Below, one piece after another: positions 131 to 48,500 of a stretch of 64,000 bases of DNA. How positions within the stretch are numbered: position 1 is the first letter of the stretch; every line of letters begins with the position of its first letter. The stretch comes from Zygnema circumcarinatum SAG 698-1b. Lineage: Eukaryota; Plantae; Zygnematophyceae. Under the pieces are notes generated by a model. That model ran no database searches. It saw only the letters and a program-made list of their open reading frames with translations, and had not been told where the DNA came from. The DNA lies in the NCBI GenBank assembly GCA_037447605.1, contig CM074807.1, positions 3,360,829 to 3,424,828 of the forward strand. Direction: 5' to 3'. Position numbers and translations under genes: made by a program.

Positions 131-17742
<17,612 letters not shown>

Positions 17743-20700: not shown

Positions 20701-21708
20701 ATTGGGGGTTGCTTCACTAGGAAGGAAGAATGTCACGTCTTCATTTGTGTTGGAATAATTCAGTTTGAGTGCAAGTAGAGCCCTTCAGGACGTTCTGTTG
20801 TTCAAAGAACATCGACTTTATGGTCTATCTCATTCTGTTCTTGTCTTTCTGCGTTTCCCCCCACCTCCCCCCAGCATACTAAGTTCGTACCTGGTAGGTA
20901 GACGGGAGGATAAGAAACAAAGAAGAGTAGGCATTTTTGGTCGAATTCAAATTGAGGAGCTTTTCCCAGTTGAAATCTTGGAGAAGAGCTGGAGTGCTGT
21001 CGCTGCCTGCTTAGGGGATGAAGGGCATGTTTCAGCAATACTTGGAGCACACAGGTTTCAGTCGTTCCAGTCTTGAGCTTCTTCTGCTCAGCTGCTCAGA
21101 GTTACTCCGTTGCGTGAACACGGGGTTACTGCATTCAGTTAGCTGTGGTAACTTTTGAGTCCCTTGTTCCTTGAAATTGGTGAGGACTTAGCTACTGCAG
21201 AATCTGCAGTCTTCTGAGCTGATTTCCTAAAGGATTGTAGCACGAATCAGTGAGAATAACTCGTGTTAGCTTCATTGGCTAAGTTTGCTACGGAGTGACA
21301 ACCCATCATTCCAGTCGTACAGTTGGAACCACCTGAAAATTAAGGAACTTTTGTTCTGACTACTTTTCCGACTCCTGAATCCTGTTGATGAACAACACTT
21401 CTTGTAGGCGAAGGTCGTATGTTGACGGTACTTCAGTTGTGACTGCAGAGCTTTGAATTACATTCTACAGCTCCTATTTTTTCTACAGGATGAGTAGGAG
21501 ATGTGAGTGCTGAACTGTAAAAGGGACCTGTTTAAGGTGTGATAATGGAGAGAAATAAGGATGAAGCTTCTGCATATTTGAGCTGCCCGAACAAGAGCTC
21601 TGACCGTTCATTTGGTCGGAGATTTGCTGTTCAGGTGGCTTGAAGAGCAGCCTCCAGACCCTTAGAAACTATCGAGGATTGAAAGACCCCGAAGTAATCT
21701 CCACTGCT

Positions 21709-24700
21709 ATGGCAGGGGCTGCAGTAGAGAGCCTGCAGTATGGAAGAGACATGCTACATACTATGACCGGAACTAAGCTTCAGGAAAACATGGAAGACAA
21801 CCTGCAGCGGAGTGATGCTGTACAGCAGATGGAGGAGGAGGAGCAGCATCAGCACGAGGAGGGAGAGGGAGTTCGGGAGGAAGAGAGAGAGGGGCAGCCA
21901 AGTGAGAACGGAGTTTCAAGCAGCTGTGTTCGATCCGAGGAGGAGGGAGAGGCGGATGTTCTGGATATGAAGGCAGAGGGGCAGGAGAGTGAGATGTCCC
22001 GCTCACATCTATGCAAAATCTGCAATAGAAATTTTCTGTCTGGCAGAGCTTTGGGAGGGCACATGAACACACATCGGGCGGAGCAAGGGGAGACTGAGGG
22101 AGGGTCCCATACAGAGACTGCAAAAAATGCATTCGGTCAGTGTGATGCTAAGCCCTCTATAGTGATTCGGCCTGCAAGTACTCGAGTTCGGACTGTACGT
22201 CACAATCAAACTCTTCTAGCTGGAGAAGGTGCAGAAAACGACAATGCAGGCTTCAGGGGAGTGAGAGTCAACGGATCTGGCTCTGGAATTGCGAAGAGTG
22301 AGGGAGAGGAAAAAATGGTAGATGAGCGGAAAGGTGGAAAGTCGCCTTCAGCTTCAAAGTCAGGGGAGGGGTCTCCCTCTTTCGACACTGATGCAGGGGT
22401 GCTGCAGGTGAAGGAAGAAGAGCAAGGGAAGGAGGGAGGGGCTCACGTGGGAGAGGAAAATGACTCAAAATGGAGCGGCGATAGCAGTAAGGTCCATGAA
22501 TGTAAGTCCTGTTTTCGGCATTTCCCTTCTGTGAGGGCTCTCAGAGGGCATATGCGCATACATAGCGCAGCAGGGGAGGGGCTGCCTAAGGTCTCAGATG
22601 CCGAAAGGAGGCCGGATGTTTCGGAGTACGAATGGTCAAGTGGGTCGGAGCGATTCTCAGGTGAGAGAGAGCGGAGCCCTCCCTCTCTAAAAGGTGGGCA
22701 TGAGTGGACCAAGAATGCTTCAGAGTGTGGAGGAGGACTGGGAGGAGAGGTTGGAGCGGATGCAGGAGCAGTCGGCTTTGTTAAGTTTCGGAGTGGGAAG
22801 CAGTTGTTTCAGTGCCGGGTCTGTGAGAAGGAGTTCATCTCCGGAAGGCTTCTAGGGAGGCATATGAAGAGGCAGCATCCGAGGGGAGTGGAGTCTGAAC
22901 GGGGTAGTGGGGAAGGTAGTGAGGGTATGGGAGGAGAAGGAGAGCGGACGGGCGAGCTTGGGGGGTCGTCGGAGTCACGGGAAGACAGAGGAGGGAGTGA
23001 TGCCGAAGGCGATAATGAGATGGGAGAGGCTCCGCGTGTGAGAGTGCATGTCTGTAGCGGATGCAGGCAAGTGTTCACCTCTAGGAGAGCTTTCTGCGAT
23101 CATAGAAAGCAGCATGATGGTGAAGGTCGCAGAAGACAGAAAAGGACCGGATCGGGAGTGGGAGGCTTAGCAGAAGCCCTTGCTGGTCAAGTGCATGTGA
23201 ATTCGGTGGAGGGGAATTTGGAGCACTCTTCAACGGCACGGAGACTGCCTGTTGGTCTCAATTCAACGGAGTGTATCTGCTCAGAATGTGGAAAAGAGTT
23301 CAACTCTTGCAAGGCCCTCTTCGGGCACATGCGATGCCATCCTGAGCGGGAATGGAGGGGGATTCAGAGGCCGGGGGAGACTCCTATTGTGAATAACAAT
23401 AATGCATCAGGAGGAGGAGGAGGAGGAGGAGGAGGTGGTGGAGGAGGAGGGAGGAGCGTGCTGAAAGGAAGGAAGAGTCAGGGGCATGAATCGGAGTCGC
23501 AAATAGGTCCACAAACGGAAGGAGAGATCATTCAACACAATCCCAATGGTGCCTTAGGATCTGACTCGGAAAGTGCTGAAAGCATTGAAGCTGCGTATGT
23601 GAACACACAGAAAAGCGTGGAGATAGGGAGTTGGATGACCGGAAAGAGGTCGAAAAGACCCAGAGTGGCTGTGAGAGCGATTCAGATACCCCCTCATCTC
23701 CTTCCTGAGAGTGGAGCAGTAGAGACTCCCTTGGCAGTTCGACAGGAAAGGCAGGAGAGGGATACTGCTGACTGCTTAGTCATGCTTGCAGCTGCAGCCG
23801 GAGTGGGGGGGCCTTCTCTTTTTCCGGAGGAGGGAGAGAGAGGGAAAGAGGGACAGGAAACGTTTGACGAGGAGAAGGAGGAGGAGATGCAGGAGCAGGA
23901 GCAGGAGAGTGGTACGGAGGAGATGGATGAGGGGGCGGAACAGGATGAGAAAGAAAGGGAGGAAATGGAGGGATTGGAGGAGACAAGCAAGATGGAGGTG
24001 GTTGAGGAGCTGAATGAAAATGAGCTGGAAAGTTCGGAGCACAACGAAGGGGAGGAAGAGATGGCAGATGTGGGGAAGCGGAGTTCAGAGGCGATGCATG
24101 AAGAACAGAGACATGGTGAAGTGATGCAGGTTGGGAGTGGAGCAGAGGAAGTGGAAGGCAACTTTGGAGAGGATGCTTCAAAAAGGAGAACTTTTATGGC
24201 AGAGGATGGAGGGAGTGGAGCAGAGCAGGGAGAGAGTATGATAGTGGAGATGCACTCGCCTCAAGTTGTGGGAGGGTTGGGAAGGAAGAGGCAGCGGAGT
24301 GATGAAACTGTGTTGCAGAGTGAAACGAAAAATATGACTGAAGACAAGCAACCCCTCCGTACATTAAAAGGGGACGAAAGCAGCGGACCCGGAACTTCAG
24401 TTGTTGCCAATAATGACTCAACCAGAAATGCTTCTCAAAGGAGGGGCTCAGAAGCTTCAGAAGATAAACTTTTAAGTGGGTGTGATAAGTACATTTGTTC
24501 CACCTGCCATAAAGTTTTTAAGTCACATCAAGCTCTTGGTGGGCATCGCGCGAGCCACCGAAAAGTTAAGGGAGTTCTCTTCCCTAAGAAACTTCTCACT
24601 GAAGGCTCTGTAACCTCTATGGTAAGTGTCCATTGCGTTCCAAGAGAGGGAGCCATTTCCTTGCAGGAGGGTGGGAGGGAGGGAGGTAGCGCTCCCTTCA

Positions 24701-26739
24701 GCACACTCAGCTCAGTCGCTATATCCACTATCCTCGGAGAGACAGAAAAGGCCAAAACTCAAGGGGATGAAGGGAGAGAGGACGTAGCGGGGCAAGTCAA
24801 GCAGGAGGAGGATGGGAGAGAGGTTGTGATAGCAGAGAAGATGGAGGAGGCGAGTAGAGAGTGGCGACTATCTGCTAACGCAGGTGTAAATCGAACAGAT
24901 CGAAGCGTTGTAGGAGGAGGTAGTGAGGGGGCTGCTTTGCCTGTGATCAGAGCAAAAGGAGAGACTCTTCTTGAGAAGGTAAAGGTGGAGACAGATGTGG
25001 GAGATGAAGCGTCTTCTCTGCATATAGCGGAGACCCGAATTCCTTTAGCACTTACGGGGAATGCGATGTCTGCTGGAAGCTCGGGTGGGAGGAAGAGGAA
25101 TGTGGGTCAGAAGGAGGGAAACTGGAAGGGAGAGAGGGCAGAGGAAGGCTCAGAGGGAGGCTCTAGTGGTGGAGGAGGGCTTGGTCTGAGAGTTCTCCTT
25201 AGAGGGAAAGGGCATGTTTGCACCATTTGCCACAAAGTGTTCTCCTCTGGTCAGGCTTTAGGTGGCCATAAGCGGTGCCATTGGACTGGGAATACTGCCA
25301 ATGATCCGGTTAATGCTAGTCCAGAACCCAGCAGCATTAGCATAGAGAATGGGCCTGCAGGGAATGAAGTGGGAGGAAACCACGCTCCGTTTGCTTCCAT
25401 TCTCGCTAAAGTAAATGGGGTGAAATCATCTCGCCAGGAAAGGACCTGCAAGGAGGAGTTTCTTGACCTAAATCTTCCCGCTCCGGAGGAGGAAGTTGGT
25501 GCGCCTATCCGCGAAGGAGGAGGAGCTCCTTCCCCACAGAATGGTATGTGGCAAAGTGGGCCCTCTAACATGGGAGGAGGAGGAGGAGGAGGAGGAGGAG
25601 GAGGAGGAGGAGGAGGAGGAGGGAGCGGACAGGGATCGAGAGTGGGGTCTCCTTCACAGATGAGTTCAGTGGAGACAGGGGTAGGAAATGCAAACAGTAG
25701 AGGCCCCTTCAGCAGCAGCAAATTGGGAGTCAATGGCTTCTCTCTGGTTGGAGTTCAAGTCCCCAATTCAAAGCCGCTGGGGATTGTCCCTCGCTCTCCA
25801 GTCTTGAACTATGGAGGAAATCAGGGCCACTCTGTATCCTCCACTACCACTCCGTCTACCTCCACTGCTACCACTCCCGCTACCACTACAACGTCTGCAA
25901 TGGATTCACCAAGTCAAGTCTCTCGCCAGCAGACCCTTCTTGAGCCTCTGACTTGTCAGAGGGGAAGCTCAGCCCGCCTTCCTCGAATGAGTCCCTTAGG
26001 AGGCCGACCCCTCCTTCCAAACCCCATGTATTCTTCCTTAGGAATGCAGGAGGAAGAAATTAAGCGTGTTGGTTTCCATTGGCTCTCATCCGGAGCTTTG
26101 GGGGGGGGGCGACTTCTCAACCCTCACAATGATGGACTGCAAAGCAGAGGCATGGACGCTCCCTCATCTCTCCCTACCCACCAAAACTCGATGGGAAAAC
26201 AGTTAGAATGGGGCTCCTCCAATGCAGGCTCTGCATCTGAAACTTCTCCCAAAAACTTGCTCGCAGCAGCAGGTTTTCAATCCCCAAGTGGAGCCCTTCC
26301 ACAGGGATGGCATCCAAACCTCACAGCTATGGGGCTTCAGCAAACTCTCTCCCCCCAAATAGCTGCCTATAATCTTCAGCAATCTTCTCTCTCTGTGGGA
26401 TCCCATCGAAACCTGCAGCAGGGGCAGCTTTTTAGCAGGCCTGCAGCTCCCGGGATGCAGCTCGCTAACCCTAATTTCAGACCAGTGGAATTCAGCTTTC
26501 GAGATGCTTATACTTTGGGAGATTCGGGAGGGAAGGGACCTTCTCCAAGGGGACTCGTACAAGGAAGATCGATGGAGCTTCGAGGAGGTTCACCTCCCTC
26601 AGGGAGCAGTCCTGTACCCTCATATGCTTGCCAGTTGTGTAAGAGAGATTTTCTCTCTTTGGGAGCTTTGGCAGCCCATGAACAGGGACAACATGGGCAG
26701 TTCCGAATGCATCCCGAATGCACCGTCACCTCCGTATAA
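21709..26739 (+). CDS. DAZ1: DAZ1/DAZ2 (ZAT2/ZAT3)-like C2H2 zinc-finger repressor with 8 fingers and an EAR motif, single exon
   Basis: Open frame 21640-26739; the track start is TTG and the first ATG is at 21709. Fingers include [29 protein letters not shown] (~23278), [21 protein letters not shown] (~24496) and [22 protein letters not shown] (~25219). It also has an L-box-like ADCLVMLA and the EAR motif DLNLP at 25465. The symbol indicates the clade; orthology is untested. Confidence 0.85.
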
Positions 26740-28840
26740 TATTCATGTTCTGACCTATGTGGTTATCAATTCTCGATATTTCCCTGATTCGGAAACTGGA
26801 GAGGGCTCTGTTTCTGTTGACCAGACGATGTCGGCAACCTGAGTGCTCTCGTGCGCTCTCTCTCTCTCTCTCTCTCTCTCGCTCTGAACCTGCAGGAGGG
26901 AGGAGGAAGGGCTGTGAGGGGAAGATGGTTGCAGGGACGATGTTCTTGTTAATAGCTCGGAGGATTGCTTTGATCTCTTAAGAGTTGTACAGAGTTTGGA
27001 ACTCGAAACGGGGAATGTCACATGGCCATTTTAATACGATATGTTGGGAAGACAAGTCCAGAATGTAGTAGTAAAGACGTCTAAAGATGTAGTGGGTATG
27101 CAGCCGCTTTTAAGAGTCTTTCGAAGGCTGCTGCTGTATATAATTGCTGCATGGGAGCACAAGCATGAAAGGCTGAAGCTCTGCAGTTGCTTGTGATGGG
27201 AGAGAAGAGTGGGAGGGCCTCAGGGAAAGAGATACTGTGGGTTATATATGAAGGCTATCCTGTATCTTTTCGGTAGGACAGCTATACAGGGGAAGGAGTA
27301 GGAGAGGGCCGAACCCTAATTGCAGCCTGCAATGAAACTTTCTACTTGGTCGCCCTCATGAAAAGTAGGTTCAAGTTGGATACAACTCCTTTAGCAGCTA
27401 GACAGTCGCAGATTTAAGCGGAGTTTTGGACTTTCTCTCGCTCTCTCTCTCTCTCTCTCCCCCTCCCTCTCTCTCCCTCTCGCTTTTGCCAAATAGCTCT
27501 AGGGGTATCGTACAAATCTATACATTGGCTAAGTATGTGTGATAAGGGGCAGTCCTATAAAGACGGGTTTCCTTGTGTACATAGTGAGGGTGGATGTGGG
27601 AGGAGCTTCCCTCTGTAGCGAGTGAGACCAGAAGAAGCACACATGTGTGATGGAGCCTCTCCCTTTGTACATGTCATCATTTTCTTACTTTCTGTGTGAA
27701 ATCAATTTTATGGCTTGGTATGTCGAATGATACTGCATGGCATAGCATGATGTGACACGACATCTTGGCATTTATGACATGGTGTAAGCCATAGTCTGTG
27801 GCATGGTAATACAAATCGAGATGTTTGAGTGTGTGTCTCCATTGTGGGTTATTCTTAATTCACCAACTTCCAATGACGAGTAAATGAAGGCATCCATGAA
27901 GTATCTAAATTATTTTCTCAGTTGAAATGTATGAAAACCAAACCAAACCTGCAGCCGAGACATCACCATCATCAGAAGATGCAGATGAACTTAATTATAT
28001 GCTTCCCTGTAGACCTGCCGTTCAGAGCACAGGGCAGCTCCGGCTGCGAAAATTACGCCACAAAGCAATCTACGCTGAAGTACAAAAGATTCTGAAGCAG
28101 AGAAACTGCGCCAATTCATGCCTTTAAGAGAGAAGTGGCATTGGTTAAGGCCCTTCTAAGGATCCCCTTCAAGGCATGTAGTGTAATGTAATGGGCCATG
28201 TGATGTTTCCGAGGCCATGGCCCATAGTATCTCGGCATGCCATACATTGAAAAATGCGCGAGTCATGCTCGGTTTATCTTGCCCTCAACCACAGAAGAAC
28301 TCGAGGGTTTGGAGGAGAAAAGGAATAAGAAATGGTTTTCCAAAGGCTGTTGAGCATGTTTTAGGGCTAAGAAAAAGGCAACATACTTCAATGGGCCTAC
28401 TTCAATGGGCCTGCTCTGTGTTGACGGAACAGAGGATGCAGAATGAAAACGGACGAGAGGGAGAAAAAAAGTGAGAGAGGAAGATGCACAAAATTTAAAA
28501 TTTTGCTTCAAACATCACGTCGCATGACGTATCAAGTTACTTTTTTTCAAGATAAAACATCGTTGACATTGTTACCGAAACGGTCGAAGTCTAAAAAGAA
28601 GCTACACACTTGTGGCATTTATTTAGCTTCTCCTCACACAACAAGAGAACAAAACCTATACCCTGTCAAAGAGGTCAAACTTCTCTTCAAAATTAAAGGA
28701 AAGAGAAGGCCAAACACCGCCGTAACCCCTTGAGCTTCCGGGTAGAAAAAACTGTGACACATTCCTGTTCCCTTCCATGTCGAGCTTGTTCAGTTCAGTG
28801 CAACTAACTACTGTACAACGGTAAGAAACAAAATTCTTGG

Positions 28841-28920
28841 ATGAGTTCCGGCATGGATCAAGAAGCAGCCCCTCCCTATGAGAGTTGTGGCTGCCTCCTT
28901 CATATAGCGGAACACTCACA
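28841..28920 (-). promoter_or_regulatory. Eukaryotic form-II SECIS element
   Basis: Minus strand reads GUUCCG-cuau-AUGAA-GGAGGCAGCC-ACAA-CUCUC-AUA-GGGAG-G-GGCUGCUUCU-UGAU-ccaugc-CGGAAC. This gives helix I GUUCCG/CGGAAC, a UGAA/UGAU non-Watson-Crick core, a fully paired 10-bp helix II, an unpaired AA and an apical mini-helix CUCUC/GGGAG. Confidence 0.88.
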
Positions 28921-29326
28921 TAGACGGTGCCTCTCTCTGCCGTGAGAGGGAGACAGAGAGAGAGAGAGGGAATACTCCCTCTCTTACCTACAAAACATGC
29001 CCCGAATTCCGCCGTAGAGCATGCTCGTGACAGCACCCTCTGACATCCTGCCAAGGCCCCAGAAGCACAATTTCACATTTTGAGTGCGCAAACATGCGAA
29101 GAAGTATGACCCCTAACGTATTATTCAGTATCAGATCTAATAAAATGTACATAATAATTTTTTTTTTTGCCAAAAACATACAACATTTTGTGCAAACACA
29201 ATGCAAACTATGGATTATTTCAATGTAATGAAATAAAATAAAATAAAGTAAACAATATACGACTAGAATTTCTATGAAGTATTCGACAATACAAACGCAA
29301 AGCATACCCTCTAAGTCGCCCTCTCC

Positions 29327-30349
29327 TTAGCTCGTTTCAACTCGGAGGTGCAGAACACTGTGAAGAGGAGGTGGGGGCGCCTCGGAGGGTTCTTTGGGCT
29401 TCCGTCCGAACATCTGTAGAACCAGAAAATGAACTGAACGGAGTGAGCATGGAAGCAGTAGAGCCCAAAAAAGGATGATGTCTATTCTTGTTGCTTTCCT
29501 CACGTCCTTACTTTGGCCTGTCCGTGAGACATTACATCATGGAACAAGTTATGGGTCATAGAACTGAAATTAGTTTGGTTTCCTCTGTAAGCCACAAAGA
29601 TCAAACCGCTGCAGCGATCACGAATAAACAAATTTGTTGAACGTTTTGGGAGGCGACTTCGCTCCTACAGTTGAATTAATGACAAGTTAAATCAAGCTTA
29701 AGTAACCGTTAGGGAAAGAACGTGGCTATTAACCTGAAGTCTCCCTCTCTTCTCCTCTCTCCTTCTCCTCTGTCCCTCCCAATTCCCTTCTCGCACTCCC
29801 TCTTTCCTCGTCCCCCCCTCCCCCTCCTCAACTCCCTCGCTCTCCTTCTCTCCTCCCATCCCCTCCCCTCCCCTCCCCCACTCCCACTCCCTCCCCCTTC
29901 CCCCTCACTCTACCTCCTCCTCCACCCCTTCTTTTCCCACCTCCCCCTCCCACCCTCCCTCCTATCCATCTCCCCCCCCCCCCTCTCGCCCTCTCCCCCT
30001 CTCCCCCTTTCCCCCTCTTCCCCACTCCCCCTCTCCCCCTCTCCCCCTCCCCCCCTCCCTCTTTCCCCCTCCCCCCCTCCCTCTTTCCCCCTCCCCACCT
30101 CCCCCTCTCCCCCTCTCCCCCTCTCCCCCTCCCTCCCTCCCTCCACCCCTCCCGCTCTCCCCCCCTCCATCTCTCCCCCTCCCTCCCCCTGCCCTCCAAG
30201 CCCACCTTCCTGAGCGTGTTCTTCAATCAGGCGGAGTGCTCCTCCGGCGACGCGCGCAGAAACTCCTTCGCGTGCTCACGCAGTTTCCCGACCGCTGACG
30301 TGGGCTCGGGCCGCCCGCACCCTCCCTCCCCGCCCGCCGCCCCCGCCAT
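29327..30349 (-). CDS. Candidate 76-aa selenoprotein (TGA41 = Sec) of an uncharacterised small plant-type family
   Basis: Exon 1 is 30206-30349 (ATG to AAG|GTGGGC) and exon 2 CDS is 29327-29413 (ctacag|ATG to TAA), joined by a phase-0 intron. Product: MAGAAGGEGGCGRPEPTSAVGKLREHAKEFLRASPEEHSA(U)LKNTLRK|MFGRKPKEPSEAPPPPLHSVLHLRVETS. The in-frame TGA is at 30229-30227 and a SECIS lies downstream on the same strand. Confidence 0.8.
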
Positions 30350-30615
30350 GGATCCTCCCTTATGCGATCTCCCTGCGAAGGGGCAAAAAGAAGAGGGGGG
30401 GGAAAGCTTCTAGAAGGACGGCCGGTTCTTTCTTTTAGCCAATGGGAAGTCGTCACGTGGACACTTTGCCCACGTGGCGAAGATGTTTAACTTTAAGTCA
30501 ATGTACGAATATGTTGAACCAAGGCGACATAACTGTCCGGACACAAAGGCTGGAGGCGCAGCACACTCCTGGAGGCACTACCCAAATTTCAAAACAGCCA
30601 TAGGAAAGTAGATTG

Positions 30616-32045
30616 ACATGCTACGTGGCACAGTTTCATTGGTTCAAACTGAGGCTAGGTACACAGCTGCCACAAAACAGCCGCTGGAATTTGTCGTATT
30701 AACCACCTGTCGCGCCGACACCTTCATGTCGGCGCATTCAAAAAGACAAGCACATGTACTGTAGAGTCAAAGAAACAGACAAAACAACATTGTACGTTAC
30801 ACCCAAAAAAAAAAGGAAAATGATACAGCGGCCCCACATTTTGGATATCGGCGCCCCCTTTTGGGAAAAATTGTACTTTTTTTTTTGGCTAATCACCCTC
30901 CCCTTGGATCTTTCGGGAGGAGAGATCTTGTAGACAATCGGACCCCGCGCCTCGCGCGCAGGATCCGACCGTGCACCAACGTACGACGCCGCGCATCGCG
31001 GCGTGGCCCGCGAGATGCGGCGAGCCTACGGAAAAGTTGTCCTCACCTGACCCGTTTGGGTCAGAGGTTGCCACGTGGCAGTCTGCCATTGGCCATCCCT
31101 GCTGCCGGTCCCCCATGCCGATACAGTGGACCCCCACCTTGTACAGTGCGTCCCCAAGAAATTTGCCCCGATTTTGCCGAAACCACCTTTTTGTACGGTA
31201 ACTCAATGTTAACGTATTAGGGGTGTTAACCTAACCTGAACTATTCTCCAATACAAAATTTGTTAATCGAAACGGATTTCAAACATGGGTCACGCTTTTA
31301 CGCTGTACGGTTAATACGAATAAAATCTCTGAGTCGTACGATATACGTACGGCACCAATAGGAGATCGTGTATCTAAATCACGGTACGATACGATACGAT
31401 ACGATATATACGAACAGACATGAACTCTAACATAATACCGCTCGCCTATTGGTAACACGGACCTTATATTTGCAAATTACAATATTTTCGCCCAGTATTT
31501 GCCGAAACCATGGCGAAAATATTATGGGGGTCCACTGTATCGGCATGGGGGACCGGCAGCAGGGCTGTCCAATGGCAGACTGCCACGTGGCAACCTTTGA
31601 CCCAAACGGGTCAGGTGAGGACAACTTTTCCGTAGGCTCGCCGCATCTCGCGGGCCACGCCGCGATGCGCGGCGCCGTACGTCGGTGCACGGTCGGATCC
31701 TGCGCGCGAGGCGCGGGGTCCGATTGTCTACAAGATCTCTCCTCCCGAAAGATCCAAGGGGAGGGTGATTAGCCAAAAAAAAAAGTACAATTTTTCCCAA
31801 AAGGGGGCGCCGATATCCAAAATGTGGGGCCGCTGTATCATTTTCCTTTTTTTTTTGGGTGTAACGTACAATGTTGTTTTGTCTGTTTCTTTGACTCTAC
31901 AGTACATGTGCTTGTCTTTTTGAATGCGCCGACATGAAGGTGTCGGCGCGACAGGTGGTTAATACGACAAATTCCAGCGGCTGTTTTGTGGCAGCTGTGT
32001 ACCTAGCCTCAGTTTGAACCAATGAAACTGTGCCACGTAGCATGT
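30616..32045. repeat. Long inverted repeat: arms 30616-31135 and 31526-32045 (~520 bp each, few mismatches) with a ~390-bp spacer; possible foldback or non-autonomous DNA element
   Basis: For example acatgctacgtggcacagtttcattggttcaaac at 30616 is the reverse complement of the sequence ending at 32045. The right arm ends at a 10-N gap, so the true termini and any TSD are not visible. Confidence 0.88.
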
Positions 32046-32055
32046 NNNNNNNNNN

Positions 32056-33075
32056 GGATATTAGCCAAAAAAAAAAAGTACAATTTTTTCCCAAAAGGGG
32101 GCGCCGATATCCAAGAGGTGGGGCCGCTGTATCATTTTCCAAAAAAAACAAACGAAAGTACGGACGTACTGGCTCTACGGTTTCCATGTTGGCGTAGCCG
32201 TGAACGGAACTGCGGACGGAGGGCTCCGCATGGAGCGGGCGGGCGCGGTCATGGCGGCATGAGGGCGGTCGTGCAGCGCGTGACGCGCGCCAGCGTCAAG
32301 GTTTTAGGGTTTAGGGTTTAGGGCTTGGGGGTTTAGGGTTGGGGGTTGTAGGGTTTAGGGCTTGGGATTTTAGGGTTGGGGGTTTAGGGTTTTAGGGTTG
32401 GGGGTTTTAGGGTTGGGAGTTTTAGGGTTGGGGGTTTTAGAGTTGGGGGTTTTAGGATTGGGAGTTTTAGGGTTGGGGATTTTAGGCTTGGGAGTTTAAG
32501 GGTTGGGGGTTTTTAGGGTTGGGGAGTTATAGGGTTTAGGTTTTGGGGTTTTAGGGTTCGGGGCTTTAGGGTTTAGGGCTTGGGGTTTTCGGGTTTAGGT
32601 TTAAGGTGTTTGGGATTTTTCACGAAACGCTGTCGAAGTTTGACTCTTTTTTCCTTTCCTTTTTATTAATATATGTTACTTCTTTTTTATGTATGCATTC
32701 CTTCATGTTTTTTGAATTCAGGTTGATGGAAAAGTGGTGTCGGAGATCGGGCCGGGGCTGTGCGTGCTGGTCGGCATCCTCGAGTCCGACTCCGACAGCG
32801 ATGCGGAATTCATGTGAGCACGGACATGAATGAATTTGGGTGCGGAATGCGGAATGCGGAAAACGGAATGCGGAATTTGGGTTGAAGTATTTGACGTGCG
32901 GAAGAAGAAGGGGCGGACTTGCGCGCATGAAAAGAGTCGAAAGAAGAAATGAATGAGGATGAGAGTAGGGCCCGAAAAGTGGAAATGGCAGATGTGGGGG
33001 CTGGTTGGTGGCTGCTGAATGGGGCGAAGGAGGGGATGGAGGGAGAGGGAGAGTCGCTCTCTGTCTCCCTTGTTC

Positions 33076-33115
<40 letters not shown>

Positions 33116-34431
33116 GCGCTCTCTTTCTCCCCGCCCTCCCCTCTTTCTACTCTCTGTATGCCTGTCTCACTCGCCCCCTCTCCGTCACTCTCCTCTCCCG
33201 CGATGTCTATATATTTCTGCCACTCCGTACCCTCTCCCCGCTCGAACTCCTCTCTCTCTTCCTTCGACCTTCCATGCCATCGATGCTTTCCTCCCCCAGA
33301 GAGAGCGAGAGAGAGAGGGAGAACGAACGAGAGAGAGAGAGCGCGAGAGAGCGAGAGGGAGCGAGAGAGAGTGAGAAAGAACGAGAGAGAGAGCGCGAGA
33401 CNNNNNNNNNNGGATATTAGCCAAAAAAAAAAAGTACAATTTTTTCCCAAAAGGGGGCGCCGATATCCAAGAGGTGGGGCCGCTGTATCATTTTCCAAAA
33501 AAAACAAACGAAAGTACGGACGTACTGGCTCTACGGTTTCCATGTTGGCGTAGCCGTGAACGGAACTGCGGACGGAGGGCTCCGCATGGAGCGGGCGGGC
33601 GCGGTCATGGCGGCATGAGGGCGGTCGTGCAGCGCGTGACGCGCGCCAGCGTCAAGGTTTTAGGGTTTAGGGTTTAGGGCTTGGGGGTTTAGGGTTGGGG
33701 GTTGTAGGGTTTAGGGCTTGGGATTTTAGGGTTGGGGGTTTAGGGTTTTAGGGTTGGGGGTTTTAGGGTTGGGAGTTTTAGGGTTGGGGGTTTTAGAGTT
33801 GGGGGTTTTAGGATTGGGAGTTTTAGGGTTGGGGATTTTAGGCTTGGGAGTTTAAGGGTTGGGGGTTTTTAGGGTTGGGGAGTTATAGGGTTTAGGTTTT
33901 GGGGTTTTAGGGTTCGGGGCTTTAGGGTTTAGGGCTTGGGGTTTTCGGGTTTAGGTTTAAGGTGTTTGGGATTTTTCACGAAACGCTGTCGAAGTTTGAC
34001 TCTTTTTTCCTTTCCTTTTTATTAATATATGTTACTTCTTTTTTATGTATGCATTCCTTCATGTTTTTTGAATTCAGGTTGATGGAAAAGTGGTGTCGGA
34101 GATCGGGCCGGGGCTGTGCGTGCTGGTCGGCATCCTCGAGTCCGACTCCGACAGCGATGCGGAATTCATGTGAGCACGGACATGAATGAATTTGGGTGCG
34201 GAATGCGGAATGCGGAAAACGGAATGCGGAATTTGGGTTGAAGTATTTGACGTGCGGAAGAAGAAGGGGCGGACTTGCGCGCATGAAAAGAGTCGAAAGA
34301 AGAAATGAATGAGGATGAGAGTAGGGCCCGAAAAGTGGAAATGGCAGATGTGGGGGCTGGTTGGTGGCTGCTGAATGGGGCGAAGGAGGGGATGGAGGGA
34401 GAGGGAGAGTCGCTCTCTGTCTCCCTTGTTC

Positions 34432-34471
<40 letters not shown>

Positions 34472-34757
34472 GCGCTCTCTTTCTCCCCGCCCTCCCCTCT
34501 TTCTACTCTCTGTATGCCTGTCTCACTCGCCCCCTCTCCGTCACTCTCCTCTCCCGCGATGTCTATATATTTCTGCCACTCCGTACCCTCTCCCCGCTCG
34601 AACTCCTCTCTCTCTTCCTTCGACCTTCCATGCCATCGATGCTTTCCTCCCCCAGAGAGAGCGAGAGAGAGAGGGAGAACGAACGAGAGAGAGAGAGCGC
34701 GAGAGAGCGAGAGGGAGCGAGAGAGAGTGAGAAAGAACGAGAGAGAGAGCGCGAGAC
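32056..34757 (+). repeat. Direct duplication 32056-33401 / 33412-34757 (offset 1356), probably an uncollapsed contig overlap
   Basis: The two copies appear identical (same ORFs in the track), and copy 1 is bounded on both sides by 10-N gaps. Confidence 0.9.
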
Positions 34758-36880: not shown

Positions 36881-38751
36881 TCATTCCCCCCCCAGCTCCC
36901 TCCGCACCATCGCCTGCAGCAGCCCCTTGGCGCCTTGCACCGGCGCCACCATGTGCCCCGCCACGAGCGTACGGAAGGGCCACCCCTCCGCGACCCGTAC
37001 GGCGCGGCGCAGGCGCGGGACCTCCCGCCGCTTGCCCGCGCGCAGGGCCAATGGGAGGAGCCCGCCGACCTGCTCGTACAGCCCCGCCAGCCGCATCGTC
37101 CATCGGTTGAACGGGAACCTGGACACGTGGCAGACCATGGGTGGGCGGGGGGTTGGCACACATGGAACAGGCTTGGGAGGGTTTCTAGGGCATTTTAGGG
37201 TTTCTAGGGTTTTTTAGGGTTTCAGGGTTCACAAAGAGTTTCTAGCAGTGAGAGGTTGTAGGGCTCATGGGGTTTCTTTGGGGTTTTATGAGGGCATCCT
37301 TAGGGTATCTTCGCAAGTTCCCCAACAAGTTGTTGTTGACATATGAGGAGAGCGCACAACAACAACGACGATGAATGGCGGAGTAACGGGCAACGGAACT
37401 GACTTGACCATGGAGTCGTCCCCATAGAACAGCGCGTCGGAGCATAGCAGCACTCCGCTCGCGCGGTGGAAGAAGAGGCCCTCGACGGGGAGGGCGGCCT
37501 GCACCTCGCGCAGGTCCAGGACCACCTGCCACGTGGCACAATAACAAGGAAGGAAGGGGAACTTTAAATCAAGTTCAATTAAATCAAATTACATCAAATC
37601 AATTCAGAGCAACAAACATTGTTATAAGCAGTAAACGACAATCCAAAATTTCTTTGATTGCGAGTTGTCATATTGGAACCCCACTCCAAACTTTGACCAA
37701 AACCTGCACCAACACTGCGACGAAGACCAACCCAAACCCTAATTCCCAAACCAAACCCTAATTCCGTCCGTACAGTACCTGCTCTATGGCCCCGCCCCAT
37801 GCCTGCGGCGGAGCCTCGTTTCGGAGCACCTCCGCCTCCTTGAGCCCCCATCGAACCGCCAAACTGAGCTCCTTCAAAGGCAGCGACGTGTACAGTTTGG
37901 CGGCGGGATACCTCTTCATATATTGCCGCGCAAAGACGCCATGTTCGGGTGCGCTGCTGCCGACCACCACATGGGCGATGGGGCCAAGTTCGGCCAATTT
38001 TAGGTTAACTTGGTCGGTCAAGTTGACCGGGTCGTGCAGCCAGACGCCGCCACCTGGCAGTTTGATCGCCGTCATACGGAGAACTGGAACGGGCACATGG
38101 AGAAGCAGGGGGGAAGGAAATTAGGGTTTTGGGGTTTGGAGGGTTTTTTGAAAATGGAGGGAGGTAGGGAAATTGGGGACAATAGACAGATTAGGGTTTA
38201 GGAGAATCAGCTTATAGTGGGTCTCTTTTTGGGGGTTCAGGGGAAATAGAAGCTTAATGGTAAAGAGTTTAGTAAGAACATAAACAAAATGATGATGATA
38301 GGATAAGTAAATAAACAAAGAAAGAAATGTTATGATTAACACTGAATAGATAACGGATTAAATGGGCAGTTAAACAAGCCTAGGTTTAGATCAACTCACG
38401 TGGATCCAATCCGAGCGAGCGCAGCCCGAGCGACTGCGTGAAGGTCCACACGCCCTCTGCCACTTCCAGAATCTCGATTCCACCGGATCCATCGGAGACC
38501 TCGGGAACCAATGCCTGGCTGCCATCTGTCACGAGGGCGCTCCGAACGTTCAACGAACTGTTCAACTTCTGAGTGGAATTGGATCCACTTTGGCTCCTCT
38601 CTCTGAGCAGGGAAGGGGAGGGCCAACCATGGCTCGTCTTTGGTCGCAATCGGACGGCGGAGAAGTTGACTCGTGGCAGCCTCTGATTGGGCGGAAGTAG
38701 GCTCGAGGGAGAAGCCGCCAATGGGAGGAGGAGGCTCTGGGAAGCTGCCAT
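36881..38751 (-). CDS. DUF4336-like (metallo-hydrolase-like fold) protein with a probable plastid transit peptide, 4 exons
   Basis: Exons 38400-38751, 37779-38083, 37404-37525 and 36881-37118 have consistent phases. Motifs RMTAIKL.GGGVWLHDPV, EH.VF, FFHRASG.L...DA and GH near the C-terminus; Ser/Arg-rich N-terminus. Confidence 0.8.
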
Positions 38752-42576: not shown

Positions 42577-45500
42577 TAATAATCGAGGTTGTTCCCTAGA
42601 GTGAAGAATACGAGACGGCGCGTACCAACGGGTTTGTGCATAGGAGCATGCCCACGCATTCTGCCCGGCACTCCTCATACGCCGAACTGATGGTTCCAAA
42701 CACGCTGTCCCAAGTCTGGCCCGGGAGGTAGCACGCCACCGGAACTTGGCCCGTGTACGGATGCCTCACCTGACCACAAGGGCTCTAGGGTTAGGGTTTT
42801 GGGGCCTTCAAAAGCATAAATAGATCACAATTTGCCAACACTTTGCTTTATGTGGGTGGAAGTAGGGCAGAGGATTGCACCCCCTGCCGGTCGTAGTTGA
42901 AGGACCCGTCCTTAGAGAGCATGAAGAGCTTGCCCGAGCCATGGCCGAAGAGCTCGTGGCAGCACACTTGCATTTCAAACGCTTTGGATTGGAGGGACTT
43001 GAAGAGCGTCTGGTCCTCCTCTGCTATGAGAGAGACCTGCTCGGAAACCACGCAACTTGCCTTTAGGTCGCTGAAAGCTGCACGAATTGTTTCCGTCTTG
43101 GAGGGAAGGGTCCTATGGCACCTAGGAGATAAGGGTGAGGGGCGAGGGGGGAGAGAGAGGGGGGAAGAAGGGAAAAGGGGGGAGGGGAGAAGTGGAGAAG
43201 GAGGAAAATTCTAGGATGTGGTGATCAGCGGAGGGACAGGGAAGGGAAGAAGAAGTGGGCGTGGGGAAGGTGGGATTGTCAAGGAAGGGAGACTGAAGGG
43301 GAGGAAAGATAGGACGGAAAGGGGCGAGAAGGGAGGGAGACGGAGGGGCAGGGATAAGGGAGGGGAGGGGGAGGGGGAGGGGAGGGGGAGGGGAGGGGGA
43401 GGGGGAGGGGGAGGGGAGGAGGAGGGGGAGGGGGAGGGGGAGGGGGAGGGGGAGGGGGAGGGGGGAGACGGAGGGGCAGGGATAAGGGAGGGGAGGCGAA
43501 GGGGAAGAGGGAGGGAAGGGGGAGGGGGAGGGGGAGGGAGAGCGAGGGGGAGGGGGAGGGGGAGGGGGAGGGGGAGGGGGACGGGGAGGGGGGGAAGGGA
43601 GAGGGGGAGGAGGGAGGGAGGGAGAGGGGGTGGGGGAGGGGGAGGGGGAGGGGGAGGGTGAGGTCGACGGGGAGAGGGAGGGGAATAGTGAGGAAGGGAG
43701 CGGAGCGGAGGCGAGGGGAGGATGCAGCAAATTTGTGGTCCGAACTGCTTAGAATATGAACAGAATAATTCTGAAACTTTATCATGACTTCTGTGAACGA
43801 GTCGCGCACCTGTTCCCCAGTGTCTACCGCCGAGAGAACATTGCCAAGTGCAAAATTCTTGAATCCTTCCGTCTGCAGCAAAGCATCCCAAGGAACGAAT
43901 CATCGTTTGTCATGCAATGGTGATTTTCTCTCTGTTAGCTGAAGGCAAGCACGACCTACAAACGAAGGAATTTACCTGTCTAACGTCCTCGTAGTTTGGC
44001 ATGTTGATTCCTGCAGGTATGCCACTCGATGCGAAGGTGATGACCTGTTCGTATCATCGATGGGCCAAAGCTTGGTCTGTGGGTGAGCGTGAGACACTTG
44101 TTCGTTGAGCAATAAATAATGTTTGGTAAAAACTGTATGGACGACCAAAAAACGCACTGCACTTTGTGCTTTATCCTTATAAAGTAGGCCGTGGTGGTTA
44201 AGGTGTTACCTTGACCTTTAAACTTAAACCTTGCCTTGACTAGACTCGTTTAGCTGACTAGCAACGCAATTTTCTCACTTCAAGACAAGTAAAGTTCGGG
44301 CTGTGGAGGACGTCCTTTTCAAACTCTCGGGGCCATGGAAGTGTATCCAACAACGCTGCTCCGACTGCCACTAAGGCAGCGAACTTGGCACTCCTCTCCT
44401 GCTTTCCGCCATTGAAACATGAAGCTCCACTTCATGCTACTTTCTTGAACATTAAACCTTAACCCCATAAAGTCAACATAGGTCATGTATTGACTATACA
44501 TTGACACAGGACTTTCGAGATGGCACTCTCGGAGTCAAGCCTTTGGATTTGGTACGCCTAACAGCTGCAAACTGTGGTAATGCATTTCACATTTCGACGA
44601 AACGCGAAAGAGAATAGGCACGATATAGCAATGACTGTTGGAAAGAAGCGAGTGATGGTATCAAATGAGTGCTCATGTGGGTGATCCTTTAGGTGAGGAG
44701 GATCATCCAATCGGAAAAGCATAAACTAGGAGGAGAAACAAACCCACTTGGTTTACCACTGCTACCAGTCCTTCAAACTCGGCTCGACTTCCCATTGGAT
44801 CTCGGTACGTCTCAATGAAGCTGCAAGAGCACACAAAACTGAATAAAACATCGAAAGTTGTGAGAATTCGATTGAGAAAAGTAAAGTTCTGAATAAAGAA
44901 AGAGAGGCTTCCACCTCCAACATTACTTTGCGCATTGTTGCTAAGTGTACAGAGTACATATTCGCGCATGCATCTAGCCTTCACACATTTATGAAGTGCA
45001 TGCGCTGGTTGCCTGATCGGATACCTTTTTCGATTTGAACGGAACGTCAAGAGCGAACCTCATACTTCAGGCTCTCCACTATCACTATTTTATTTATTTA
45101 TTTATTTATTATTATTATTTTTTTTTAATTTTTTGTTATTTTTTTAAATATATTTTTTATTTATTTATTTATTCATTTATTCATTTTTATTTATTTTTGC
45201 TTCTTTATTTTTTTTAAAATTTTTTGGAGAACTATATACGGCCCCCCTTTTTGGCTATCCCGCCCCTGTTTTTTGAAAATCCCACTCTCCCATTTTGGCT
45301 ATTCCGCCCCCTCCCATTTTGGGGTATCCCGCCCCCTACTTTGGACATTCCCCCCTTGTTTTCTCCTTCTCACACATCAGCGCAACGTCCGTAAAGACAT
45401 TCGCAAAGAGAGAGCAGAGCAGAGAAGAGAGGGAGAGAGAGAGCTCTCTCTCTCTCTCTCGCCCTCTCTTCTCGGCTCTCTCTCTCTTCCTCTCTCTCTT

Positions 45501-48500
45501 CCTCTCTCTCTGTCTCTTGAAGAGCAGAGGAGAGAGAATGAGCAGAGGAGAGAGAGACTAGAGGTGAGAGCAGAGTGAGAGCCGAGGAGAGAGAGTATAG
45601 AGGAGAGAGGGAATGAGAGAGCAAAGGAATGAGAGCAGAGGACAGAGAGCAGAGGAGAGAGAGAATAGAGGAGAGAGCAGAGGAGAGAGAGAGAGCAGAG
45701 GAGTGAGACTAGAGGAGAGAGCAGAGGAGAGAGCAAAGGAGCGACAGAGAATGAGCAGAATCTCCTCCCGAAATATCCAAAAAGGGGGGATAACCAAAAT
45801 GGGAGGGGGGCGGAATAGCCAAAATGGGAGTGCGGGATTTCAAAAAAACAGGGGCGGGGTAATAAAAAAGGGGGGCGGTATATAGTTCTCCTTTTTTTTT
45901 TTAATTTAAAAAAAAATTCTTATTTTTTATTTTTTATTTAGTTTTATTTTTTTTCACTTCCCCTCACCTCGCCTTTGCTTCCCTCCCTCTTCTTTCCCTC
46001 CCATCCCCTTTCCCTTCCCCTCCTCCCTCGGCCTCCCGCACATCCCCATCCCTTCTCCTTCACTGCAGCTGCCCTCTCCTACCCTGCCCTGTCCTGGCCT
46101 GCCCCTGCTCTCATTCCACCCCTCCCTTTCACTTCCTTCCCAATCCCTTCCAATCATCCCCTCGCCTCCTCCTCTCCTTTCCAATGCCTCTTTCTTTCAC
46201 TACCCGTTCCCTCCCCTTCCCTTCCCATCCCCTCCCCTCCCTTTCACTCCCCGTGCACTCCTTTTTCCATCTCCTACCCTAATCTCTCCCACTGCCATCC
46301 CTCCCCTCAACCTTACCCCCTCCCCCCTTTCCTCCTCCCTCCCTCCTTGTATTCTCTTCCCCCTCCTTCCCCTCCCTCCTCTCTTTATTTTCCCCTCTCC
46401 CCCCCTCTTGCCTCCACTCCCCTACCTCCCCGCCCCCTCTCCTCCTCCTCCTCTCCCTACCCGTCCCCTTCCCTCACTTCCCCTCCCTTCGGCCTGTCGA
46501 CCAGTTCATTCTCCTTTCCTCCCCAGAAAAGGGGAAGACAAGGTACAATATCAGAAAGGTTAAGAATGAAAGAGGATACAGTAGTCTCATCAACTTGTGT
46601 ACGATCTGCAGTCATCTTACCCAATGTTGGTTTCCACTATAGGCGACCGGTCTCGGATCCAATACCGCTGGGAATTCTTGTGCGCCTGTATAGATCCCGT
46701 TTCAAAACATCTAATGTACCTGTTCACATTACATAAAATTCGTGAAAGTGACAGGAGGATGAATTGGATATGGAGGGAATGGCTAAAATTCTGGACAGGG
46801 AGAGGGAGCGAGAGAAACGGGAAGTGAGGGCGAGTTGTAGACAAACATGGAGGTTATGGAAGAGGTGTGGGAGGAATCATAGGGCTATGCATGCGATTGA
46901 AGTGGTGATGGCGGGAGGAGAGAGAGGAGTAGGGGGGGAGAGAGGTGTACTCGGATATCATGGCGGTCTGGTTTGCATTGGCGGCATAGAGGCGAGCCTT
47001 CTCTAAGTGCTGCACAACCTCCCTCAGCTCCACCTGGTGGTCTCCGTAGACAATGTGAATCTTGCACGAACCCTTCCTCCATTCAAAATTTCCCCACTCT
47101 CCCACGAACCCAAGTTAATAAGCAGCCTTTGAAGCTTCAAATTTATGTCTTGCAATTGATCTTTTGACGGTGACTCGATACCTGCAACTCTGTAAGTCAA
47201 GACATAGAAGACAGCAATTTCTTTGAAGACAAAAGGCCCACGAATTCACTCCCTATCAGCATTCACTCCGATGTGCGCATAACTCTATAAGTTGTGTTCA
47301 GCTGAGCAGTTCTTGCAATAAAAGAACCAAAGTGATCGGCTGCGCAAATCCTCAGCTGAAAAAGGTGCAGAGCAAGAGAGACGGGGGAAGTGAGAGAGGA
47401 AGAGAGAGGGGTAGAGGCACACCTTGTGTGTGTTAGTCTCAGTGGGGAGCGTCTGCGCGGAGGCTACTCGCAGCTCATACTCTGCAAGGGCTGAACACTC
47501 TGTTTCGAAAGAGGGAGTGGGAGAGACACGGAACAGTCGTGTGTTCCACGTTTCCATTCCCTCTTGCTGCATCCAATCCTGCGACCAAAGCACCTCCACC
47601 CGTTTTGATTTTTCAATGTTTTGGAGACATATGTGGTAGTCAAATTTAGCTAGTTACTGTCAAATTTGCAAACGGCTAGTGCCAATGCAAGAATATGGTC
47701 ATAACAATGACTGCCAGCCCTTTCCGGGAGAAAGAGGGAGAGAAGGTGAAGGGAGAGAGGACACAAGAGAAAGAGGAGAGAGAGGAAAGGGGAGGAGAAG
47801 GGAGGAGAGGGAGTAAGGAGGGATGGAAGAGGAAAAGCACTGCGAGGGATTGAGGAGAGGGCTGCACGAGGGACAGAGGAGAGGAGATGAAGGAGAGACT
47901 ACAGAGAGAAAAGAGAGAAAGTAGAGGAGAAACGAGGGACAGGGAGGAGCGGGAGACGAGAGAGCGAGAGATAGAGAGGAGCTCGAGAGAAGCGGGAGAG
48001 AACAAAGAGGAAGAGAGGAGAGGGAACGAGCGAATGAGAACGGAGAGGGGAAGCGACTAGAAGAGGACAAAGTACAAAGAAGCGGAGTGACAAGTGGGAA
48101 AGACAAGGGACAGAAGAGAGGGGAGAGGGACAAGAAAAGCGTGAATGAGTAGAGGAAAGGAGAAAGCAGGGAACAGACCGAGGGGAGGGAGAGCAGAGGG
48201 ACAGAGGGCAGAAGATGGTCAGGGTTTGATGAGAACAGGAATAGACAAGAGTAGAGGGAGAGAAGAGAAGAGAGGGCATGAAGAAAGAACAGGAAGTAAA
48301 AAGAGAGGAGAACAGGCGGAGAACAGTGGAAGAAAAATAGGGGGGGAGAGAGCGGGGAGATGCAAAAAACGATGAGGAAGAGGGAAAAAGACGAGAGGAA
48401 AGGGAGAAGTGGAGTGCCTGCACGAGGTCAATCTCGGCAGCGGTAATCCCCCGCGAGTAGTATCCACAGACTCCCCGAGGATGGAGGCCCAACTGCCGCT

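Follow-up and report, generated by a model that had tools for sequence, protein, structure and literature searches.

A form-II SECIS-like hairpin downstream of a small UGA-containing reading frame in Zygnema circumcarinatum may mark a new small selenoprotein

The window analysed here, the whole 64,000-nucleotide stretch of Zygnema circumcarinatum SAG 698-1b contig CM074807.1, is plant-like eukaryotic DNA, and a short locus on its minus strand carries promoter-like boxes, an open reading frame, an in-frame UGA, a SECIS-like hairpin and an AATAAA in that order, a coherent arrangement on one strand (Table 1). Converging on this locus from the plus strand is a 1,711-codon uninterrupted frame (21604-26736), whose product has long runs of Gly and Glu and several C2H2 zinc fingers of the plant QALGGH type. 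On the minus strand a multi-exon DUF4336 gene occupies about 38120-36960 (Pfam E 2e-12 for one exon), the final coding exon of which seems to stop at a TGA near 36960. An inverted repeat (30616-31136 and 31525-32045) lies directly upstream of the promoter of the candidate gene; its 521-bp arms are of 99% identity and 388 bp apart, it ends exactly at the N gap that begins at 32046, and it is a foldback element or else an artefact of the assembly. Beyond it, two 1,346-bp copies of 100% identity (32056-33401 and 33412-34757), each directly after a 10-N gap (32046-32055 and 33402-33411, respectively), look like a product of assembly or scaffolding rather than biology, and the assembly upstream of 30616 is unreliable. 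At the other end of the window a 3,750-bp tract (6663-10412) is pure C and T when read on the plus strand, largely as (CT)n, and is unusually long for a pure-pyrimidine microsatellite.

Table 1. Features of the candidate selenoprotein locus, listed in minus-strand order; model B is the two-exon gene model preferred in the text.
Feature	Coordinates	Strand	Basis
Promoter-like cluster: CACGTG 30476-30471, CACGTG 30459-30454, CCAAT 30443-30439	30439..30476	(-)	sequence
Candidate exon 1: ATG 30349, 40 codons, TGA, 7 codons, donor AAG/GTGGGC 30206/30205	30206..30349	(-)	sequence, periodicity
In-frame TGA, candidate Sec codon, residue 41	30227..30229	(-)	sequence, periodicity
Inferred intron, model B: mainly a GA-rich low-complexity tract, no periodicity	29434..30205	(-)	GT..AG sites; inference
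Candidate exon 2, model B: acceptor CAG/TTC 29434/29433, 40 codons, stop TAG 29313-29311	29311..29433	(-)	GC3 contrast, splice sites
Possible 3' UTR intron: donor AGG/GTATGC, AT-rich body, pyrimidine tract and CAG acceptor 28937/28936	28937..29307	(-)	inference
Extended lower stem GUGAGU / ACUCAU, lengthening helix I	28841..28919	(-)	MFE and centroid structures
SECIS-like form-II hairpin	28846..28912	(-)	Rfam SECIS_1 match, folds, sequence
AATAAA, candidate poly(A) signal, about 225 nt past the hairpin	28618..28623	(-)	sequence

Read on the minus strand (sequence of 28700-29100), the hairpin consists in order of helix I, an internal loop, an AUGA/UGAU quartet, helix II, an unpaired AA, a mini-helix and an AUA loop. 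AUGAA occupies 28903-28899, and its first four residues (28903-28900) stand opposite UGAU (28860-28857) directly below helix II, the position expected of the tandem sheared G.A quartet of a kink-turn. Helix II pairs GGAGGCAGCC (28898-28889) with GGCUGCUUCU (28870-28861) and, once A28899-U28860 is added, comprises 11 contiguous pairs (28899-28889 with 28870-28860), two of them G.U. Above its 5' side ACAA (28888-28885) is unpaired, and of these residues A28886 and A28885 are unpaired in both the minimum free energy (MFE) and centroid folds, the AAA of the Rfam SECIS_1 model being their counterpart in the alignment. The apical mini-helix is formed by CUCUC (28884-28880) and GGGAG (28876-28872), five base pairs closing the three-nucleotide loop, and the lower helix by GUUCCG (28913-28908) and CGGAAC (28850-28845). 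The element thus has the quartet, a helix II of about one helical turn, the unpaired AA(R) and the mini-helix of a form-II SECIS. Every one of these parts, from the AUGAA and ten consecutive pairs through the ACAA, mini-helix and UGAU to the lower helix, was found on the minus strand where the first-pass annotation of this DNA had placed it.

Folding agrees with this anatomy. A 90-nt segment adopts all of the helices in both its MFE and its centroid structure (-33.6 kcal/mol, z -2.5), a fold equalled by 4 of 200 shuffles. Within its 231-nt context the hairpin is retained in both structures, and there no shuffle folds equally well (z -4.3). The complementary plus strand folds poorly (-25.2 kcal/mol, z -1.0) because the G.U pairs turn into A.C, and as it is weaker than the minus strand the structure is specific to minus-strand RNA.

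Rfam SECIS_1 aligns end to end (model positions 1-64) with 28912-28846 at 32.6 bits, and no non-standard pairs are flagged. The gathering score of this family is 35, leaving the hairpin 2.4 bits short and absent from a gathering-threshold Rfam scan; that cut-off is set by curators and does not itself describe anything biological. Searched in 4 kb, the match has an E-value of 0.00088; for both strands of the whole window and all 4,227 families the value is 0.014, which for SECIS_1 alone amounts to about 3e-6 per window and therefore, under the model's null, to well under one such match per gigabase. There is no second SECIS_1 match in the window among the 150 listed of 173 matches. The earlier description of the element as textbook is slightly generous for a score below the cut-off; its parts and spacings are canonical, and the assignment to form-II SECIS elements is itself well supported by the anatomy, the near-threshold covariance match and the strand-specific fold.

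A hand-written SECIS descriptor (quartet, helix II of 9-13 bp, AA no more than 4 nt above helix II, helix I of 5 bp or longer), composed post hoc with the candidate already seen, matches this site alone in the window, and dinucleotide-shuffled windows average 0.07 matches. By itself the descriptor is not specific genome-wide, and the covariance-model score is the stronger statistic. At the scale of the window the hairpin exceeds chance.

The other high-scoring Rfam matches in the window are miRNA models on low-complexity palindromes. Near-perfect palindromic or low-complexity hairpins at 45405-45560, 10370-10460 and 6540-6720 attract dozens of sub-threshold matches to unrelated miRNA models on both strands, and are probably simple-repeat artefacts. 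A plant miRNA precursor was considered for the SECIS-like hairpin too and rejected: there is no duplex of about 21 nt with few mismatches, as the AUGA/UGAU core forms a 7 x 7-nt internal loop that breaks the stem, and the Rfam miRNA families give no match overlapping 28846-28912 with E up to 10.

The UGA-containing reading frame lies upstream of the hairpin on the same strand, as had been claimed. A pyrimidine-rich leader separates its ATG at 30349 from the promoter-like boxes, whose CACGTG (G-box) and CCAAT motifs (30476-30439) suggest a plant promoter. In candidate exon 1 the GC content at the three codon positions is.67/.58/.88. This periodicity begins at the ATG and is absent upstream, and the third-position signal (0.93) continues over the TGA up to the donor. 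The seven codons after the TGA have G or C at all seven third positions and at 3 of 14 first and second positions, a contrast reached by 8 of 39,844 random 21-mers of the window in fixed phase (about 2e-4), and the level of the 28 codons spanning the TGA is reached by 184 of 39,542 random pieces; both figures, like those for exon 2 below, come from a periodicity statistic that was picked after the pattern had been noticed. Two confident neighbouring genes have little GC3 contrast, and the signal is therefore peculiar to this gene, not one that marks coding sequence across the genome. Codon-position periodicity is thus independent support for a frame that continues past the UGA. Two further coding measures were of no use here, a codon log-odds model trained on two neighbouring genes giving no decision with exons this short, and a position-specific GC likelihood being discarded as confounded by overall GC.

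The encoded N-terminus is of low complexity over its first 16 or so residues and G-rich like the adjoining tract. Around the candidate Sec (..EEHSA-U-LKNTL..) the 10 residues to each side include no Cys, nor was a redox motif of the CxxU, UxxC or CxU type found there. The locus is single-copy within the window.

Further downstream the GC-rich phase is that of a frame open from 29481 to 29314, which the acceptor at 29434/29433 would link to exon 1 in phase 0. The exon 2 so delimited (model B) has a GC3 contrast of 0.28, equalled by 291 of 39,410 random pieces in fixed phase and by 843 of 39,410 when the best of three phases is taken. The first-pass annotation had used a different second exon (MFGRKPKE..., model A, 76 aa), in whose frame the contrast is -0.04 and coding periodicity is absent; the acceptor 20 nt upstream fits better, and the frame chosen for that second exon was probably wrong. 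Model B accordingly gives the most likely product, a putative orphan protein of 88 aa encoded by 30349-30206 and 29433-29314, with Sec at residue 41, its splice sites being predicted and ambiguous. Two other arrangements were tried and rejected as they have no periodicity, namely an alternative donor at 30279 with the frame that carries a TGA at 29339-29337, and a mid exon at 29664-29512.

The 3' end of the candidate gene can be drawn in more than one way. An AGG/GTATGC donor-like site lies 3 nt past the model-B stop and is followed by 371 AT-rich nucleotides, the possible 3' UTR intron of Table 1. With this intron spliced, the SECIS would begin 27 nt past the stop and 171 nt past the UGA; with the intron retained, these distances would be 398 nt and 542 nt. 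All of these spacings (27-398 nt from the stop, 171-542 nt from the UGA) are workable. The AT-rich stretch 29300-29100 could instead be the terminator region of the small gene. The SECIS stem has a consensus GTGAGT donor (28919) at its 5' base, followed 109 nt downstream by a pyrimidine-rich, CAG acceptor-like site (28810), and use of this pair could make the hairpin intronic. In a search of sequencing runs, the three runs guessed to be RNA contained no words of the locus, and the seven runs that carry the stretch look like DNA, with a share of about 0.7, intron included. On the sequence, then, the hairpin may belong to the mature mRNA of the UGA gene, in a putative 3' UTR.

Searches with the candidate protein returned no relative. 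Pfam at E up to 1 gave no family for any of five locus pieces, families of the SelK_SelG, Rdx, Sep15_SelM and GSHPx type included. Exact-ORF look-ups returned no record for four ORFs of the locus or for the zinc-finger ORF next to it, a word-indexed homology search found nothing for the 60-aa stretch before the TGA or the 55-aa downstream frame, and the ESM Atlas gave no usable neighbour for pieces of the candidate protein. Three matches from an exhaustive phmmer search were rejected, two (P0001 and P0003) as tandem-repeat translations whose E-values are summed from short stretches, and the third (P0002) as it offers no matched stretch to inspect. The sole match of a metagenome scan (L001) was likewise set aside: its similarity is limited to PKNPPRRP, stops surround it, and it lacks a SECIS. 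The downstream exon shares with SelK the five-residue word NPPRR, which we regard as a lead, not a test; a SelK reading was rejected for want of a Pfam SelK_SelG match. The word-indexed protein collection also has no match at E up to 1e-20 for the 1,676-aa neighbouring protein, indicating that the lineage is poorly covered and that the lack of a homologue is therefore weak evidence of orphan status.

Three alternatives have to be weighed against a working SECIS that serves this reading frame. The hairpin could be a chance structure, the nearby ORF and its TGA coincidental in a repeat-rich, low-complexity region, and the TGA either the ordinary stop of a 40-codon ORF or part of no gene at all. 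This view draws on the SECIS_1 score under the gathering cut-off and on the descriptor, whose rate in shuffled windows would yield many sites genome-wide; it would also account for an ORF without homologues or domains, for the resemblance of its N-terminus to the adjoining G-rich tract and for the lack of locus words in the RNA-guessed runs. Yet chance sits poorly with the single-family E-value, with a fold confined to one strand, with a periodicity that crosses the TGA, and with the coherent succession of promoter, ORF, UGA, hairpin and AATAAA on one strand, and we regard it as unlikely.

Less probable still is a real SECIS that belongs to a different gene model, with another Sec codon whose exons were lost in the misassembled region upstream, are micro-exons below the size that can be detected, or use another frame or acceptor. 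The inverted repeat and the exact 1,346-bp duplication abutting N gaps leave room for such a loss upstream of 30616, and strong acceptor-like sites are present at 30372, before the ATG, and at 28936, just before the hairpin. However, Pfam recognises no family in 20 minus-strand stop-free segments between 30727 and 36653, and no known selenoprotein gene with exons of at least 40 aa claims the SECIS. The start of periodicity at the ATG and not upstream, the promoter-like motifs directly before that ATG, and the lack of periodicity from the donor at 30279 and in the frame with the TGA at 29339-29337 likewise argue for the present model.

That the element and ORF are relics, which a lineage shedding its selenoproteins keeps from a decaying selenoprotein gene but neither expresses nor uses any more, is improbable: it would suit desmid transcriptomes with none, one or two selenoproteins (PMC6627142), the silence of the RNA-guessed runs and the orphan ORF, but no pair is broken in any model helix of the hairpin, and the ORF frame is intact before and after the UGA and has kept its periodicity.

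We therefore favour, with moderate confidence, a working form-II SECIS in the 3' UTR of a small gene whose UGA (30229-30227) would be read as Sec. Transcription of the minus strand from near 30400 would place the hairpin in the 3' UTR of that gene, where the tandem G.A pairs of AUGA/UGAU would form a kink-turn bound by SBP2. SBP2 would then recruit eEFSec with Sec-tRNA to the ribosome, and the UGA would be decoded as selenocysteine instead of terminating translation. The more specific proposal, that the SECIS recodes UGA-41 of the 88-aa protein and that this protein, having no homologue, domain or CxxU, represents a new lineage-restricted selenoprotein family, is put forward tentatively, as a prediction that is plausible and still rather less probable than its contrary. 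The element itself is ordinary and of a well-known kind; the interest lies in the new small selenoprotein that it may mark, as judged from one sequence.

Land plants as a whole have lost selenocysteine, and the Zygnematophyceae are their algal sister group. Form-II SECIS elements occur in most animal and green-algal selenoprotein mRNAs. The Zygnematophyceae and other streptophyte algae are reported to have Sec machinery and a few selenoproteins (PMC6627142, PMC7539508), and a SECIS in this window is therefore expected biology. If the ORF is translated through its UGA, it would represent an undescribed selenoprotein family in a lineage with only a handful known, one adjoining the point at which land plants abandoned selenocysteine. 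It would also mean that scanning for the SECIS first recovers tiny genes that are missed by homology- and ORF-based annotation.

Compared with the form-II elements of Rfam RF00031 (SECIS_1), the hairpin shares the AUGA/GA quartet, the 11-bp helix II, the 5' unpaired AA, the mini-helix and a helix I below the internal loop. It departs from them in an extra C-G pair that splits ACAA into A, C-G and AA, in an unusually long lower stem and in its score just under the family cut-off. Among orphan selenoproteins the closest likeness is to SymSEP of Symbiodinium (PMC7539508), as the candidate is recognised only because a UGA occurs together with a SECIS, has no known domain and is of narrow taxonomy; orphan families of the SymSEP type comprise several sequences with ESTs, whereas the candidate is a single locus. 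Like proteins of the SelK and SelS type, the predicted product is short and has neither CxxU nor a thioredoxin-like redox motif. Its putative Sec is central (residue 41 of 88), in contrast to SelK and SelS, in which Sec lies near the C-terminus.
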